In this document: positions 56,890 to 64,000 of the stretch, piece after piece
How positions within the stretch are numbered: position 1 is the stretch's first letter
Layout: every line of letters starts with the position of its first letter
Assembly (NCBI GenBank): GCA_950097015.1
Contig: CATNEN010000003.1
Location: 3,658,001-3,722,000 of the forward strand
Direction: 5' to 3'
Origin: Macrostomum hystrix
Taxonomy: Eukaryota; Animalia; Platyhelminthes
DNA: 64,000 bases
Notes under the pieces: generated by a model
The model's database searches: none
Seen by the model: only the letters and a program-made list of their open reading frames with translations
Told to the model about the DNA's origin: nothing
Program-made: the position numbers and the translations under genes

Positions 56890-57552
56890 TGACTTAGCGG
56901 CAGGGGGCCTCCATGACGGACGCAGCGAGGAGGCGGCTGGTGCCGCCCATATCGCTAACCCCTGGCAGCCAGACGGCCTCCAGCGAGGCGGTGCCGCTCA
57001 GGGTGGTCCGTCGGTCGGTTCCGCCGCGCGATCTTCCTCGCCATAGGCTGGGAAGAAATCAGCTCGGCCGGTATCCCGGAGGAAGTGGGCGAGCTGTGGG
57101 ATGTTCTCGGGCGAGCAGGCTTCGGCAAGAGTCGGTGCCGGCCCGAGGTGCTTTAGCCTAGCCCGGGTGAAAGCCGGGCAGTGGCAGATGAAATGCTCGG
57201 CGTTTTCACGGCCGGAGCAGCAGAAGGGACACGTTTCCTCAGGCACGTGGCCTTGGAGGTAGCGGTGTCTGGTGAAGCAGCCATGTCCCGAAAGGGCCAT
57301 GGTGACTGCTCTCAGGTCTCTGCGGTTTAGCCTGAGTAAGGCCTTACGCAGGTTTCTAGAGGGGGTTGGCACCGCAGCCCTGGACTGGCGACAGTTCAGG
57401 GTGCTAGACCACCTCCTCCGGTGCTGGGTCTCCATCCAGTGGTTGATGCTGGAGTTGACAACGGAGATGGGGATCGGGGATTCCGGGCCCGGGCCCATCA
57501 GGGAGCTGGCTGCTCCAGCCTTTGCAAGCTGGTCCGCCATCTCATTCCCTGT
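56890..57552 (-). mobile_element. 5'-truncated LINE 3' end (RNase H end plus CCHC knuckle; Loa/I-group-like)
   Basis: GNEMADQLAKAGA, LSGHG, CPFC...ENAEHFICHC; GC-rich block with sharp edges. Confidence 0.88.
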
Positions 57553-58179
57553 GAGCCCTATAATTTGCTATGAAATGCAAGGATGTGCTATGAAAAGTGT
57601 GGCCTTTTTGCAAGTGGTATATTTTTTATAAGTTAGAAAGCTGAGATTCACAATCTGAAAAGGGGATAAATTTATATATATAAATTTGCTTTTTGCAGCA
57701 AAAGTTTTTTTAATTTGGCGTTAGAATTGTTCTATAAATCAACAATCGACTAAAGTTTTTTATTTCAATGCTAAATTTCGTAAAATAAAAAAAGAAATGG
57801 AAAACATTAGGTAGTATATACGAACATCAAAAATCGCAATTCGGCTTGAGCTTGAGCTTGATTGGGACTTCTGACCGAGGGGTACGAGTTCACTAATTGT
57901 TATCAGCTTTAGCTAGCATGCTGAATACTAAAAAGTTATAATATACGAGTATATATATTTAGAAGGGATTAGTTATAGATCAGAACCCAGTCCATGGACT
58001 GAACAGCTGTACGCAGCTTTTATCACAACAGCTGCTGCTGTGCTAAAATCAAGAAGTAATTTGTATGAAAACACAGCTAAGCAATCAGAGGTTTTTGTTT
58101 TCGGAGTGCAAGAAATCTTTCTCCTATATTCAGCGTTCAATTTCACTGACCAATCCCAGCAGGCGCACATGTGCTACAA

Positions 58180-61100
58180 TCACACGCTCTCCTCGTCGGA
58201 ATCAATCTGCGACTGGCCGGATTTCTCCGTGAAGGTCAAGTCGCCGCAAACGTTATTGCATTCGTGTCTGACAAATATCTTAGCATTGTTATTGATGCTG
58301 CACTTGCCCAAGTAGCGAACTTGTATTATTCTGCCCTTCAGACGGGTCGAGTTGTTCTGATTTGAGTTCTGTAACGAAATAATTTTGTTATAGTTATGTT
58401 TTGGCTCTAACAGATAATAATACCACCTGAATAAGATGTTCAATAATCAATAGATAAGACGCCCCTAGAATTTCGCTTCGTGACGTCATCACGAATAATT
58501 TGACAAATACAAAGCGGCACCGACCCCAAATCCATGGTAGCAACCCGCTAAATCCAGGGTGGCACTTAATCCACAATGGCGCCCATAGAACATGTCAGTC
58601 TGAATAACCCTAAAAGTGCTTTTGCTAGCCACATTAAGTGCACACTTTGCACGTACTTTTCATAGTCACATTTGCGTACATACGAGCTAATCGTATATAG
58701 TGTACATGCAAAAAAGAATTCTTAATTTCTCACCACATCCTCGCCCAAGCAGGAGTTGTTCATGAAGCGTACTTCATTCTCGCCATTGATGCGAAAATAG
58801 ACACCGTCCGGCTTCGCGTCGAGCACCTCAGCAAGGTACTCGTGGCCCAATTTAAAGTGAAGCTTTAGCGCACCTTTAACACTGCGCCTCTCCTTCAGTC
58901 GTTGAATGACCCACCTGCCCAGCAGCTGCAGGAATCCTAGAATGATGCCGATGCCCATCAGAGCGAATAGGCCGCATAGGTATTCGAACCCCAGTTGGAC
59001 CTTGTTCTCAATGTCTGTCTGTCCTGAGTAGCAGCGGTTTAAGTCGAAGTATTTGGAGCGCAGCTGAGCAAACTCAGTGTCTTTACGCGCTTTCAGTTGA
59101 TCGTTTAAATCGTTTTTAAAACGGAAGCCTCGTCGAAAGAACCAAGTCAAATAGTGACTGTTGGCTATGTTGCCCATGACCTTCAGTTTGCAATCGAGGT
59201 TCTTAACAAAGCTCAACGTGTCAGCACTGGCGATGAGGATAAATGTTGGATCTAATAACACCTTCGCTATGGCTTCATCGACGTTGTTCAGGTACATTTC
59301 ATCCGGCCACTCCAACTGAGCTCTGGCGTGCACCTTTGGCCAATTGGTCTTCACCTGCCTGTCCACTAGCGAGTCCTTGATGTAGCCCCATTTGTAGCCT
59401 TTGGTATTGGCTAGCTCGCCAACGGAGGCAAAGACCACCTGCTCGTCTGGCTTGATTAGGAAAGCAACCAGATTGCTCAGGTAGGTTGTCATGTAAAGAA
59501 GCGTAGAGAACCATAATAGCAAGGTGAATAGTCGACTAGACAATTTCTTAGGCTCAGTCTCCACCTTGGACATTAGAAATGACGACAGGACTAAGAAGAA
59601 CGATTCGAACGGCGTGTACATGATCTTGTTCTGCGTGTTCGGACTGATTTTATCGCACACGTACAGCGTTGCAGACAGCAATACTATGGCAACCACAATG
59701 CTGATCCAAACGTAGAATGAAAACGGTTGAAATACGTGAAAGAAATCTGTAGAATGGACCATCTTTCTGTTGAGCATCTGAATGCCGTCTTGAACCATGT
59801 CTACTGACAGGTCCACATATTCGATTCGATCGAATGTTGGAGACATGAAGTTTAGGGACACGTCTGCGGACTGGGAGATTCAGTGGTGGTGGAGGTCAAT
59901 GATGGCTACCTGTTTGATTTTCATACTACAATAAGAGTAGAAAAAATACTGTACAACTGTTCAGTGCGTGGACTGGGCAGACCGACAAACGCACGTAAAT
60001 GTCTACCCCAGATGATGCTGGTTAAAATTCGAACTATCGACCTTCCTGACAAAACCCCGAAGCTCTATATCTACTTCGGCTAAAGTTGAAACTCCCATTT
60101 TAGCTCCTGCTCATACTAAGTAAAAGCCCCTAAAGATGAAGTCTCACCCCATTCTTGAGCATCTCGAACACTTCGTTCTGACTGTTCGTAGCCACCAGTT
60201 TGTACTCGAAGCCGAGCCTAGTCCTCATGGCTTCCACAATCTCAATGCACAGTCCGCGGGCGGTGCTCTTATTGCTGTTGTAGTCGTAGAAGTATGGCTC
60301 AGACTGCAGGCAAGATGGTGCGAGCGATTTTGGATGATAATTCTTATGTCAAGAGTACAATTTCTAAGAAAGATTTTTCGCGTAGCTTTTTTTTAATTCC
60401 ATCGACTCTGAATCGCGTAAGAGAGCATGCATTTTATAAGAAATAAAAGCTTCAAACGAGACAATTGACTAACCATATAGGCAGCGAATGTAATGCGACT
60501 GCGCGAAATTGCGTCAACGCCTTTGTACTCCGGCCTGTACGGCGGCGAGGCTTCGCTAATCCAACGACCAGAGAGGCTAAACAGGTTGTCAGGCGGTTGG
60601 CTTCGATTGCTGCGCAGGACACTGATTTGTACACTGGATCGAACGTGACTATTAGCGTCGTAGGTGAATGAGCCGCTTAGCGGGTCCACTATGCTGGGCT
60701 CCTGCAAATTTAGCCCCATAGGAAAGAACTCAGATAGAAAAATGACGAGCGAAACTCCTCATTCGGAGGAGGAGGACAAAACTCGTGTGGAGATAAAACT
60801 TCTATCGCACAAATTCCACTAATGTCAGGCTAACTTATCCCAGTGACCTTTAAATCAGGTGAACTAAAAACATCCCGTTTGAGGACGGCGCGATAGCCCC
60901 AGACCAGCCCTATTTGTAAGGCTCCTTTCTTCGACTTAACTGGAAAAGCGGAAAAGCGCCATACATTCCTCTGCTTTTCGACACCTTTTCCAATTTTCAT
61001 CAAAACTTTAATTCCAACTTCTACATTTTTGCTCAAGCTTGTGGGTATTCCTTTGAGCAGTGCGTAAACAATGTCTAAGAAAAACAGAAAACATCGTTTT

Positions 61101-64000
61101 CCCAAAAACAGAAAGTTGCAATGCATAAAAGTTTAATAATTTTCGTTGAATTTCAAAGTTTTTTGGTTGATTCGACAGGTATTTTCTTTTGCGATCTCAA
61201 CACGTTAAGCCCACCATTGAGTGAAAATTCTGATTACTAATAGAAGTGTTTTCTGCTTTACAAATGTTTAAGGTTGTGCTTGTAAAACTTTAATTGTTAT
61301 TGCTTGTTGGAGAATAAGCAAGATGATTATTAGCAGGGGTAAGGCGGCGACCAAACAGAGAGGTAATAAGAGGGGAGAGAAAAATACATCAACAATCTCT
61401 AATTGGGTCAGATGCGCAGCCGACAGCACAGCCGCAGCTAATTGCGCGGCGCATCTGAAGGCTGCGTACGGCTGTTCAGTCCATGGACTGGGGACGTCAC
61501 ACCCATCCTCAGTCAGTCACATATCCAGCTGATTGTGAAGTTTAGCAAAATAGTAAACTTAATCAACATGACTCACCGCCGCAACAGAATGAGACAAGGT
61601 TACGTTTGAAGCAGTACGCGTCCAGCTGTTGAAGGCCTTCAAAAAGTGGTTGATACAGTCCAGAAGAAACGGCTGAAGCAGCTCCTGTCTCGTGTACTTG
61701 TTGCTGTCCATTAGACGGAAGGTGTAGAACTCGGCGTCGCTACGATAAAACCTGGTCAGGTGCTTTTCCGTGTCGAACTGAGGATCAAAATTACATGAAA
61801 AGTACACAGGTGATTTGCTTTAATCTATCTCGAAAGCATCTAATACAATATACAAAGCACTCACCAGACTTGGCACAAAAAAATACTGGGACGACACCAG
61901 AATGCCAGCCCTCGACGCCTAATTGGGAAAAATTAAAAAAGACCAGATTTTTTATCATTCTCTCTCTAAGATGACAGAAATCAGAACAGACTTCTGTCAG
62001 AACAGTCAGAACTCTGTGTGAGTGTTCTTGATGCGTACAGCACGGGCGGAGCCAGGGGAGGCAAGGCGTCCCCCTGTTAGTGGCGTCGCCCTTGTAGTGG
62101 TAACCCGGTAGTACTCGCGCCCCCCCTAGTACTGACGCCCCCTAGTACTGGCGCTCCCCCTAGTACTGACGCCCCCTAGTACTGTCGCTCCCCTAGTACT
62201 GGCGCTCCCCCTAGTACTGACGCCCCCTAGTACTGGCGCTCCCCTAGTACTGGCGCTCCCCTAGTACTGGCGCTCCCCTAGTACTGGCGCACCCCTAGTA
62301 CTGGCGCCCCCGTAGTACTGGCGCACCCCTAGTACTGGCGCTCCCCCTAGTACTGGCGCTCCCCTAGTACTGGCGCTCCCCTAGTACTGGCGCTCCCCTA
62401 GTACTGGCGCTCCCCTAGTACTGGCGCACCCCTAGTACTGGCGCTCCCCTAGTACTGGCGCACCCCTAGTACTGGCGCTCCCCTAGTACTGGCGCTCCCC
62501 CTAGTACTGGCGCTCCCCTAGTACTGGCGCTCCCCTAGTACTGGCGCTCCCCTAGTACTGGCGCACCCCTAGTACTGGCGCTCCCCTAGTACTGACGCCC
62601 CCCTAGTACTGGCGCTCCCCTAGTACTGGCGCCCCCCTAGTACTGGCGCCCCCTAGAGGCACGTCCACCCCAAGAAAATAATCCTGGCTACGCCACTAGC
62701 GTACAGTATCAGCGTGCTCAATATTCAGTGGAATTGGCAGAAGCACCTACTCGCTGGCTTCAGGTCGACTTTAGTTTTTATAATGATATAAATTCGTACA
62801 GAGTTATTATACACGTTTAACGCCAAAACCATTTTGTGCTAGGTGTACCTGCTGGAGAGTCCTCTCCATCAATGCTAGATTCGGCTCGTCAAACAGCATG
62901 ATCCAAGCCACTCCGCCAGGTAGGGAGTTGGGATCATACCTGCTGAAGGCGTTGTAAATATCACTATCTGAGCTGCTGTTATCCACCTGGTGAACGCTGA
63001 ACAGACGAGTGGCGAAATTAACCAGGAATTGACTGCTAGCTGCAAAAAAAGCAATCCAATTCAAAGTTTAAATATATAAAAATAAAAACGGCCCTTTCAA
63101 GGACACTTTAATTTTCGGATTTTGAGTAATTTGAGCAAACCGAGGGAGGTTGTAGCCTAGTGGTTAGGGCGTCGATCCCACGACTTGAAGGTCGGGGGTT
63201 CGATTCCCGACTCCACTGAAACAATTTGTGTCCTTTAGCAAGACACTTAACTCTGCATTGCTTCAGTTCACCCAGCTGTTAAATGCGTACCAGCATCAGC
63301 TGGGATAATTGAAGGTGGTTGTGGCGTACGCCCAGTCCATGGACTGAACAGCTGTACGCAGCCTTCAGATGCGCCGCGCATTAGCTGCGGCCGTGCTATC
63401 GGCTGCACACCTGACCCAATCGGGGCAGGTATAATCAATTAAATTAATTCTTAATTGTCCCAAAAATATCACGAAAAAAGTGTTCAAAGGTTCGAATTAC
63501 CAGGGGTACCATCGGACACCGCAACGAGCGTGTTCCATTTGTAGACAGCTGATACATCGTACAATGCGACACTCAGATGAAAATTGTCTATTTCAATTTC
63601 GAATATATTCGGCGTGCCTGGCGGAAAGTTGAAGACCTTCTTGCGGATGACAAAGTACGGAATGCCTAGAGAATAGGACGCAATGGCCAGACTGATGTAA
63701 TAGTCTGAGATCACGGCCGCGACACCGAAGGACACAAGACTCGATTGAACTGAAATCGGCAATGAAATCTATTAGTCACTTGTTGATAAGTTAGGCCGAT
63801 AGTTGAAATTCAAGCCATTTCTAACCGGTTTGCGCGCCAGAAACACCCTGCTGATTGGCATCGATTGATAACAGGACAAAGTCGACAGATAGGCCGGTTT
63901 TAGCAGCGTAGGGAAATCTGGCCCTGGACAAGCTGGGATTGCTGACCAGTGTCTTCAGGTAAACAAACACGTTGAAGTCTTCCACGGCTGCAGAGGGATT
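58180..64000 (-). CDS. Divergent ionotropic glutamate receptor family subunit (ATD, LBD, M1-P-M3-M4) with S1-like cytoplasmic tail; 5' end lies beyond the window
   Basis: Exons 63826->64000, ~63501-63749, 62849-63039, 61865-61918, 61577-61777, 60474-60701, 60148-60303, 58734-59870, 58180-58368. Motifs: EPY..., GLCIEIVEAM...LGFEY, DRIEYVDLS, FQPFSFYVW, PKKLSSR, TYLSNLVAFL, M4 GLFALMGIG. Confidence 0.88.
59950..60080 (-). mobile_element. SINE family A fragment
   Basis: CTGTTCAGTGCGTGGACTGGG and CCCAGATGATGCTGG. Confidence 0.6.
61398..61532 (-). mobile_element. SINE family A, 3' half
   Basis: Near-identical reverse complement of 63330-63420. Confidence 0.85.
62041..62698. mobile_element. hAT-type MITE filled with an 18-19-bp minisatellite (CCCCTAGTACTGGCGCT)
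   Basis: TIRs CACGGGCGGAGCCAGG / CCTGGCTACGCCACTA; 8-bp TSD GCGTACAG (62033-62040 and 62699-62706). Confidence 0.9.
63142..63448 (+). mobile_element. Full-length tRNA-derived CORE-like SINE, family A
   Basis: A box TAGCCTAGTGG (63153), B box GGTTCGATTCC (63197), core TGTGTCCTTTAGCAAGACACTTAACTCTG..CAGCTGTTAAATG, 3' hairpin 63409-63430. Confidence 0.9.

Follow-up and report, generated by a model that had tools for sequence, protein, structure and literature searches.

Gene structure and transcripts

The window, by which we mean the whole 64,000-nucleotide stretch of Macrostomum hystrix DNA analyzed here, carries an expressed multi-exon gene for an ionotropic glutamate receptor (iGluR). It runs on the minus strand from 57988 to at least 63982, with a 58734/58368 junction between its last two exons (Table 1). 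The start codon was not located within the window and may be beyond 64000. Read on the minus strand, the large exon ends at 58734 in GAG GAT GTG/gtgaga, with the GT of the intron at 58733-58732; left unspliced, the long open reading frame reaches an in-frame TAA at 58724-58722. The acceptor is ttacag/AAC, with the first base of the last exon at 58368, and past it the spliced frame remains open (NSNQNNSTRLKGRIIQVRYLGKCSINNNAKIFVRHE...EESV) down to the TGA at 58182-58180. Since the large exon (59870-58734) comprises 1137 nt, or 379 codons, the junction is in phase 0.

Use of this splice had been predicted from the letters alone, with RNA-seq named as the means of checking it, and the prediction was borne out by transcript contigs from three public runs of one study (X4, X5 and X6). 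These contigs of ~2.9 kb align with zero mismatches to 57988-58368, 58734-59870, 60148-60303 and 60474-60702. The interval 58369-58733 (CT..AC on the plus strand, hence GT..AG on the minus strand) is exactly absent from all three, contig depth within it being 0. Because the contigs join 58734 to 58368, the iGluR frame extends to the TGA at 58180-58182. The adjoining junction, 59870/60148, was also seen in run X1 from a second study. Note that evidence of this kind consists of assembled contigs, from which rare variants are dropped and which do not give isoform ratios. A short dispersed repeat begins at 57986.

Table 1. Features of the receptor gene in the window, listed by coordinate, with the basis for each assignment.
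Feature	Position	Strand	Basis
3' UTR of last exon	57988..58179	-	X4/X5/X6 contigs start at 57988; minimum extent
TGA stop of spliced frame	58180..58182	-	Sequence and ORF translation
Acidic C-terminal extension beyond S1 (CNNVCGDLTFTEKSGQSQIDSDEESV)	58183..58260	-	Disorder predicted in ortholog; unconserved
S1 second half: loop end, b4, b5 (...RLKGRIIQVRYLGKCSINNNAKIFVRHE); start of last exon	58261..58368	-	Family tail HMM, ortholog identity, A5 profile
365-nt phase-0 GT..AG intron, inside S1 between b3 and b4	58369..58733	-	Transcript contigs; same position in paralogs
S1 first half: b1-b3 (FKLGHEYLAEVLDAKPDGVYFRINGENEVRFMNNSCLGEDV); end of large exon	58734..58856	-	Family tail HMM, ortholog identity, A4 profile
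Large exon, 379 codons	58734..59870	-	Ends from transcript contigs; Pfam Lig_chan
Basic juxtamembrane linker (QRLKERRSVKGALKLH)	58857..58904	-	Alignment; helix continuing M4 in ortholog model
M4 transmembrane helix (YLCGLFALMGIGIILGFLQLLGRWVI)	58905..58982	-	Hydrophobic stretch ending the Lig_chan match; aligns to GluA2/GluK M4 in relatives
Exon, part of ligand-binding domain	60148..60303	-	Contigs; tblastn of P0003 362-414, 75% identity
Exon	60474..60702	-	Contigs; tblastn of P0003 285-361
Amino-terminal domain exon, approximate ends	61565..61918	-	tblastn of P0003 200-288
Amino-terminal domain exon, approximate ends	62849..63040	-	tblastn of P0003 136-199, 67% identity
Amino-terminal domain exon, approximate ends	63487..63753	-	tblastn of P0003 52-140, 71% identity
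5'-most exon in window, approximate ends	63827..63982	-	tblastn of P0003 1-52, 38% identity

From the end of ligand-binding segment 1 the large exon runs through M1, the pore loop, M3 (YMTTYLSNLVAFL), ligand-binding segment 2 and M4 into the S1 domain described below, whose first half it contains. Its proposed identity as an iGluR is upheld by a match to Pfam Lig_chan (PF00060) of 70.6 bits (E 1.6e-19, cut-off 30.8). In P0003, a partial protein that is the ortholog in M. lignano, Lig_chan scores 67.7 bits. SBP_bac_3 scores 30.8 bits (cut-off 26.4) across residues 368-689 of P0003, corresponding to a bilobed ligand-binding domain into which the channel is inserted, and Lig_chan-Glu_bd scores 28.5 bits, slightly under its cut-off of 30. 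Both S2 cysteines are invariant across the receptor family. The whole P0003 model, whose mean pLDDT of 51 is low, fits full-length GluK2 and GluA2 by Foldseek (E 8e-22 to 1e-17, 750-850 columns); among the matches listed there were iGluR rows only, S1 matches being masked.

As in the AMPA and kainate receptors GluA2 and GluK2, the receptor comprises an amino-terminal domain, a ligand-binding clamshell, M1, a pore loop, M3 and M4, and its M3 gating motif (YLSNLVAFL) is of the SYTANLAAF type. The tail sets it apart from GluA2 and GluK2, being a conserved domain predicted to fold. C-terminal regions of known iGluRs are short or disordered and act via linear motifs (PDZ ligands, phosphosites and the like). 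The receptor also resembles the protostome variant IRs, which are divergent, lineage-expanded iGluR relatives with altered ligand-binding residues. To our knowledge, none of the IRs described has a folded domain on its cytoplasmic side, and the IR reviews and phylogenies searched covered neither flatworm members nor an S1-type tail.

Sequence and predicted fold of the tail

The sequence-only reading had assigned the tail following M4 to the S1 domains of polynucleotide phosphorylase (PNPase) type. The paralogs of this genome were used to build one profile per half of the domain, each from a separate exon (A4 for the first half and A5 for the second), and both profiles were searched against the PDB (177,635 sequences). 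A4 matched human PNPT1 at 632-655 (E 0.058) and A5 matched it at 680-704 (E 0.0087). Each match is marginal taken singly; the two are collinear on PNPT1, their spacing agrees, and PNPT1 was the only real PDB match of both. The same two segments of the human PNPT1 PDB chains contain the strings that the sequence-only reading had given for this protein. PNPT1 was also the top PDB match when the last exon of a single paralog was searched with phmmer; phmmer searches of the PDB with other single exon pieces returned nothing useful. The resemblance between tail and PNPT1 is far beyond chance.

A family tail HMM was built from the M. lignano and cestode proteins. It scored 38.1 bits (E 1.5e-10) on the ORF of the S1 first-half exon alone and 22.2 bits (E 1.4e-5) on the last exon alone, and with it the six S1 ORFs known in this genome all ranked within approximately the top 25 of 2320, in register. 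Scores from hhalign for the tail HMM against the known S1 ORFs were 19-25, the maximum among 300 random ORFs being 16.7. The first half of the domain is 76% identical to residues 748-789 of P0003 and the second half 65% identical to residues 802-835; the acidic C-terminal extension is unalignable to P0003. The proposed check with the Pfam S1 profile (PF00575) did not reach threshold. Taking the 22-bit gathering score as the operational threshold, there was no match on the two window exon pieces (searched separately) or on P0003. In four relatives S1 was the best Pfam match of the tail, at 20.2 bits for P0005, 15.2 for P0132, 14.7 for P0002 and 12.2 for P0007, so that the score is below the cut-off in every member. 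A PUA_4 match on the window pieces (E 0.071) was taken as noise.

All structures discussed for the tail are predictions, modelled on two natural relatives, P0093 and P0003. The five-stranded OB barrel that had been anticipated was found in the AlphaFold model of P0093, where strands at 225-233, 237-242, 249-253, 277-285 and 292-296 and a helix at 254-257 are arranged in the order b1-b2-b3-helix-b4-b5 as an antiparallel barrel (tail pLDDT 65-87). Foldseek returned 42 matches for P0093 at E<=1e-3, most of them S1 domains and the remainder iGluR chains on the channel part. The top matches were all S1 domains, with E down to 1.5e-5, and the highest identity was to human PNPase (25%). Alignment of the P0093 tail to S1 domains with VIA-align gave Z values of 10-10.7 and rmsd values of 2.0-2.8 A over 73-78 residues. 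The model of P0003 has the same S1 topology at moderate confidence (tail pLDDT 61-73), with a helix at 709-747 in which M4 is continued into the linker; its residues 832-857 have pLDDT below 50. Neighbours of the ESM Atlas model of P0003 were S1 domains only (TM 0.68-0.77), the best being chordate PNPT1. A complex prediction with four copies of the P0093 tail had a score of 0.00 and gives no answer on homo-oligomers.

Comparison with the S1 domain of animal PNPT1 (PDB 9kjr, 9kjt and 9njb) reveals a shared five-stranded OB barrel, in which a helix separates b3 from b4, and the motifs L-E-F-G-x-x-Y-x-A, G-V-x-V and G-x-x-I-x-V-x-Y-F/L-G-x-D in common. The flatworm domain differs in that it ends a membrane channel, without the two RNase PH cores and the KH domain that precede it in PNPT1, and in that the b2 residue is M in PNPT1 but W or Y in the flatworm tails. 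By reading of the alignment, these tails also lack the histidine that classical S1 domains typically have on b3. Generic S1 domains (bS1, eIF2alpha, RNase E/R, Tex, DHX8 and exosome cap subunits) have the same fold, whereas their sequence similarity is weak, as reflected in the Pfam S1 scores of 12-20 bits. The possibility that the window protein is itself a PNPase was rejected: it is an iGluR up to M4, and only its S1 domain is PNPase-like. Taken together, we assign a probability of approximately 0.85 to the identity and architecture in which the post-M4 tail of this gene is an S1/OB-fold domain of ~80 residues, with the animal PNPT1 S1 as its nearest sequence relative.

Distribution and conservation of the family

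The suggested search for relatives combining an iGluR with an S1 domain was productive. This genome has four paralogs whose tail is split in the same way, and in three to four paralogs the S1 intron lies at the same place, in phase 0 between b3 and b4. The architecture is also found in M. lignano and in cestodes (Rodentolepis, Hymenolepis, Spirometra and Schistocephalus). The source name of one relative is "S1 motif domain-containing protein", and the Schistocephalus relatives bear the source name "Polyribonucleotide nucleotidyltransferase 1", which suits only their tail. Within this analysis no member of the family was seen outside flatworms. The claim that no iGluR-S1 fusion is known also stood, in that no publication on such a fusion was found in the literature searched. 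The combination is conserved in flatworms and undescribed in that literature, and the S1 tail has been kept since before the split of free-living macrostomids and parasitic tapeworms.

Mean identity within the family reaches 31-32% in the S1 strands, compared with 19-21% in the ligand-binding and channel regions and 16% in the loop, and three of the five invariant columns fall in the tail. As judged from these alignments, the receptor family is best conserved in its S1 strands. Several searches were less useful. The sole match to the large exon in a protein homologue search, M. lignano P0001, is a garbled gene model, and the tail region of P0010 returned only P0010 itself in such a search. When whole short relatives were searched against the PDB, iGluRs filled the lists among the matches listed, so that no information on the tail was gained. 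Weak further matches in this genome (C33:4847608, C25:1884346 and L002) were judged to be chance or relics.

Two ways in which the domain could be illusory bear on the assignment. The splice evidence for 58734/58368 comes from assembled contigs of one study, with rare variants lost and isoform ratios absent, and the junction might reflect infrequent or faulty splicing, or an error of assembly, the normal protein stopping at the TAA at 58722. We consider this very improbable given an identical, error-free contig in three runs with zero depth in the intron. The M. lignano ortholog and three paralogs that share the intron position moreover retain the last exon, and a barrel without this exon would miss b4 and b5. 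That the S1 likeness is due to chance, and the tail an ordinary disordered iGluR C-terminus, would accord with the blank Pfam S1 result on the two window exon pieces. This explanation is scarcely credible when two independent half-domain profiles choose PNPT1, collinearly, among all PDB sequences searched, two independent structure predictors both give an S1 barrel, and conservation within the family is highest in the tail. A true S1 domain at the end of the receptor is the reading we retain.

Possible origin and function of the S1 domain

The domain appears to be a putative exon capture, in which part of a gene for a mitochondrial RNA enzyme was transferred to a membrane receptor. Its most likely source would be the 3' end of a PNPT1-type gene, taken up in an early flatworm, after which purifying selection would have retained it. 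Profile searches of this genome for possible PNPT1 genes were blank with PF03726, returned only other S1 and KH genes and one exosome RNase PH subunit with TIGR03591, and returned five exosome-like loci and no PNPT1 with PF01138. PNPT1 was thus not found in this genome by these three profiles, a result that does not prove its absence.

Due to the established topology of iGluRs, we infer that the S1 domain lies on the cytoplasmic side. A tetramer would then have four copies of it just below the inner mouth of the channel. The default ligand of S1 domains is single-stranded RNA. The most probable mechanism, though at somewhat less than even odds in our estimation, is that the OB surface binds a cytoplasmic ligand, by default single-stranded RNA, and so ties the receptor to RNA or RNP particles, or that these affect its gating or trafficking. 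Classical S1 domains use an aromatic b2 residue for base stacking; a b2 aromatic (W or Y) is kept in most family members, and D and R in the b4-b5 segment, which PNPT1 has too, are mostly kept. The net charge of the S1 domain ranges across the family from +13 to -8, with cestode members neutral or acidic, which weakens the RNA-binding idea as a general property.

This range of charge also favours a reading in which the tail is a genuine S1 fold that has been turned to protein-protein contacts, assembly or trafficking and binds no nucleic acid, for example as a dock for a scaffold or kinase in the manner of the eIF2alpha S1 as a protein interface. S1 domains of eIF2alpha rank with the best structural matches, the b3 histidine is missing, and most of the invariant residues (Y, G, F and Y-x-G) look like core rather than surface positions. 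The retained b2 aromatic and b4-b5 D and R argue the other way, and no partner is known; such re-use should be considered possible but less likely than not. We regard as unlikely the fuller form of the RNA-binding reading, in which four PNPase-type S1 domains under the pore bind RNA, so that the receptor anchors specific mRNAs or RNPs at the signalling membrane or is itself gated or modulated by cytoplasmic RNA. If this were true, an ionotropic receptor would be physically and directly connected to RNA, for which no iGluR precedent is known.

A conserved, folded tail of a nucleic-acid-binding type, set against the short or disordered tails of other iGluRs, points to a cytoplasmic input to or output from the channel unlike any described for these receptors. 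As tapeworms have the family and no member outside flatworms came up in this analysis, it may deserve attention as a receptor class specific to parasites. Transgenesis and RNAi exist for M. lignano. The S1 tail, a small domain, should be easy to express, and channel recordings could be made with and without it.

Receptor gene and 3' splice

The large exon of the window gene matches Pfam Lig_chan at 70.6 bits (cut-off 30.8). A search with a profile of this exon and its paralog over 1.84 billion representative proteins yielded two that are nearly full length and run beyond the large exon by exactly the lengths of the respective last exons: P0003 (Macrostomum lignano PAA92080.1, 857 amino acids) and P0002 (M. 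lignano A0A1I8HFD1, 783 amino acids). P0003 is collinear with eight minus-strand blocks and is 80% identical in the large exon; the window therefore holds the ortholog of this protein. P0003 itself matches Lig_chan, SBP_bac_3 and, near threshold, Lig_chan-Glu_bd, and its AlphaFold model aligns with the full-length receptors GluK2 and GluA2 across 750-850 columns, with E values as low as 8e-22. The M3 gating motif, read from the sequence, is retained as YLSNLVAFL. This is a complete subunit of the ionotropic glutamate receptor (iGluR) type. By established iGluR topology, everything after M4 is cytoplasmic.

The long ORF in the window ends ...NNSCLGEDV, followed by VRN and a stop. At this end the DNA reads GAG GAT GTG/gtgaga, and from the downstream acceptor the frame is open to a TGA. 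A contig of about 2.9 kb in each of three public RNA runs from one study (X4, X5 and X6) maps to the four transcribed segments in the table with 0 mismatches and skips the last intron exactly. No contig sequence was found inside this intron in the four public runs compared over 57900-61200. Because the large exon has 379 codons, the junction is phase 0. The splice proposed in the sequence-only reading, 58734 to 58368, is thus the one used in transcripts. Note that expression evidence for this junction comes from a single study, and that assembled contigs demonstrate presence rather than isoform ratios; the neighboring junction, 59870/60148, is carried by run X1 from a second study.

Features of the receptor gene and its surroundings (window positions)
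Feature	Position	Strand	Detail
Blocks collinear with P0003	63982 to 58246	minus	eight blocks
Transcribed segment	60474-60702	minus	
Transcribed segment	60148-60303	minus	
Large exon	58734-59870	minus	last exon base 58734
Long ORF (ORF list)	58722-59861	minus	
Last intron	58369-58733	minus	GT..AG on gene strand
Last transcribed segment	57988-58368	minus	acceptor ttacag/AAC at 58368
Codons for -E-S-V	58183-58191	minus	
TGA	58182-58180	minus	
Short dispersed repeat	57986-58020, 61402-61492, 63331-63420	both orientations	35-nt core, ~90 nt in two copies
Tandem array	62071-62719		17-nt unit, ~38 units (from length); within receptor-gene intron
180-aa ORF	56998-57540	minus	just downstream of receptor gene

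Identity of the tail

The two tail exons of the window were searched separately, never as one joined protein. Exon-wise profiles of the four paralogs, A4 (b1-b3) and A5 (b4-b5), were run against 177,635 distinct PDB sequences. A4 matched human PNPT1 632-655 at E 0.058, below which there was just noise (E 2.6); A5 matched PNPT1 680-704 (E 0.0087) and nothing else. Each match is marginal alone; the two independent searches choose the same protein at collinear positions. The half-domains lie 24 residues apart in PNPT1 and about 26 apart in paralog L004. The PNPT1 sequence quoted in the sequence-only reading is indeed present in PDB PNPT1 at these sites. PNPT1 is also the top PDB match of the L004 last exon alone.

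Ten natural proteins, from M. lignano and cestodes, served to build a tail-only HMM. Scored apart, the window pieces gave 38.1 bits (first) and 22.2 bits (second). Of 2320 ORFs ranked by this HMM, the top 25 or so include all six known S1 ORFs of the genome (eIF2alpha, RPB7, SPT6, DHX8, a Rrp5-like protein and one other), aligned in the correct register. By hhalign, 4 of 7 S1 ORFs score 19-25, above the maximum of 16.7 among 300 random ORFs. The Pfam S1 model is the best tail match in four relatives, below its 22-bit cut-off (highest 20.2 bits), and has no match on P0003 or on the two window pieces.

Predicted structures of relatives agree with an S1 barrel. In the AlphaFold model of P0093, a database relative of 298 amino acids, the tail (pLDDT 65-87) has the order b1-b2-b3-short helix-b4-b5. 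Its best Foldseek matches in the PDB are all S1 domains (a/eIF2alpha, E 1.5e-5; others are ribosomal S1, GSP13, PNPase KH-S1, DHX8 and RNase E), with 42 matches at E<=1e-3 and the highest identity, 25%, to human PNPase. VIA-align of the tail gave Z 10-10.7, with an rmsd of 2.0-2.8 A across 73-78 residues; bacterial PNPases are among the matches, at rmsd 1.9-2.0 A. The P0003 model has the same tail topology (pLDDT 61-73), and for residues 750-832 of an independent ESM Atlas model of P0003, S1 clusters are the sole structural neighbors (TM 0.68-0.77), the best being a chordate PNPT1 cluster. As modeled, the tail adopts a diverged S1 fold, and it is homologous to the S1 domain of PNPT1. The window protein as a whole is not a PNPase, since nothing ahead of the tail is PNPase-like.

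Distribution, conservation and origin

The search for iGluR relatives with an S1 tail found them in four genes of this genome, in M. lignano and in cestodes. In all four genes (the window gene on C3, L004 on C38, L047 on C24 and L051 on C7) the large exon ends just past b3 (...NNSCLGEDV/gt, ...NNSLHSDPTK/gtgagt, ...SPDPNK/gt and ...SPDASK/gt, respectively) and a short last exon encodes b4-b5, for example ...LKMRQKIQVQYFGKDSATQNRIFARL in L004 and ...TVEVVYFGNDPKTGERLFKRSG-stop in L047. Two of the paralogous proteins terminate just past b5. The same tail follows an iGluR channel in proteins of the cestodes Rodentolepis nana, Hymenolepis weldensis, Spirometra and Schistocephalus solidus, and in two further proteins from transcriptome assemblies. 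The S. solidus source name is 'Polyribonucleotide nucleotidyltransferase 1' and that of one R. nana protein 'S1 motif domain-containing protein', so automatic annotation had already picked up the tail.

Three of the five invariant columns in a 15-sequence alignment lie in the tail. Mean pairwise identity is 32% in b1-b3, 31% in b4-b5 and 16% in the loop between; it is 26% in M4 and 19-21% in the ligand-binding and channel regions. Compared exon by exon, the tail pieces of the window gene and P0003 are 76% (b1-b3) and 65% (b4-b5) identical, and the loop and acidic end gave no alignment. On these alignments, conserved strands and a variable loop have the look of a folded domain under purifying selection.

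The PNPT1-specific motifs, together with the phase-0 intron that the tails share within the domain, suggest capture of 3' exons from a PNPT1-type gene before the macrostomid/cestode split. An insertion of 17 residues, located exactly where the b3/b4 intron lies, distinguishes Spirometra isoforms P0007 and P0153, and model P0004 stops exactly there after reading into the intron (K/VES); both hint that the intron position is also shared beyond this genome. Exon-level searches with PF03726, TIGR03591 and PF01138 found no PNPT1/PNPase gene in the genome, which does not prove absence; RNase PH matches look like exosome subunits, and PNPase-type S1 sequences were seen only on the four iGluR genes.

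Several sequences were observed in passing. P0152 (M. lignano, 974 amino acids), in which the family tail runs straight into 7-TM receptor-like sequence, is probably two adjacent genes merged by the gene caller. P0001 (M. lignano, 446 amino acids; 'OB_NTP_bind domain-containing protein'), the only match of a word-indexed protein search, is a garbled model with scattered ortholog fragments. A short ORF piece, TGIWIRLRGWREVEFDPN (C33:4847608-4847667; L060 ~1500-1560), resembles tail b2-b3 (E 0.013); it could be either a relic or a chance match.

The published literature searched does not describe any iGluR that ends in an S1 or OB tail; the family proteins are public in databases under automatic names. 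The channel family itself is known; its cytoplasmic domain, conserved and folded in the predicted structures, is unreported.

Possible function and neighboring elements

We regard the architecture, splice, conservation and predicted fold as established, and function is graded separately. In the P0093 and P0003 models M4 continues as a basic helix into b1 within about 10 residues, so four S1 barrels per tetramer would lie close beneath the inner mouth of the channel. Single-stranded RNA is the usual ligand of S1 domains. Most family members have W or Y, an aromatic residue, where b2 provides its stacking position, and the D and R near b5 that PNPT1 also has are mostly kept. The b3 histidine is not kept in the receptor tails, and the net charge of the domain spans +13 to -8, the cestode tails being neutral or acidic; the histidine loss and the charge range were counted against a general RNA role. 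Weighing these, we give binding of RNA or a polyanion a probability of about 40%. A tail that serves protein docking or assembly is rated slightly less likely than this, and the remainder falls to other roles.

The window protein ends -E-S-V, which resembles the class I PDZ-binding termini of NMDA receptor subunits. This ending is not conserved: the M. lignano ortholog has -T-S-A, and the paralogs have acidic runs or end after b5.

The short dispersed repeat sits at the transcript 3' end, where receptor gene contigs end, and in two introns; its core recurs with 2-3 mismatches in many unrelated transcript contigs. Judged by its translation alone, the 180-aa ORF, whose end is rich in cysteine and histidine, looks like the C-terminal portion of a protein encoded by a retrotransposon.
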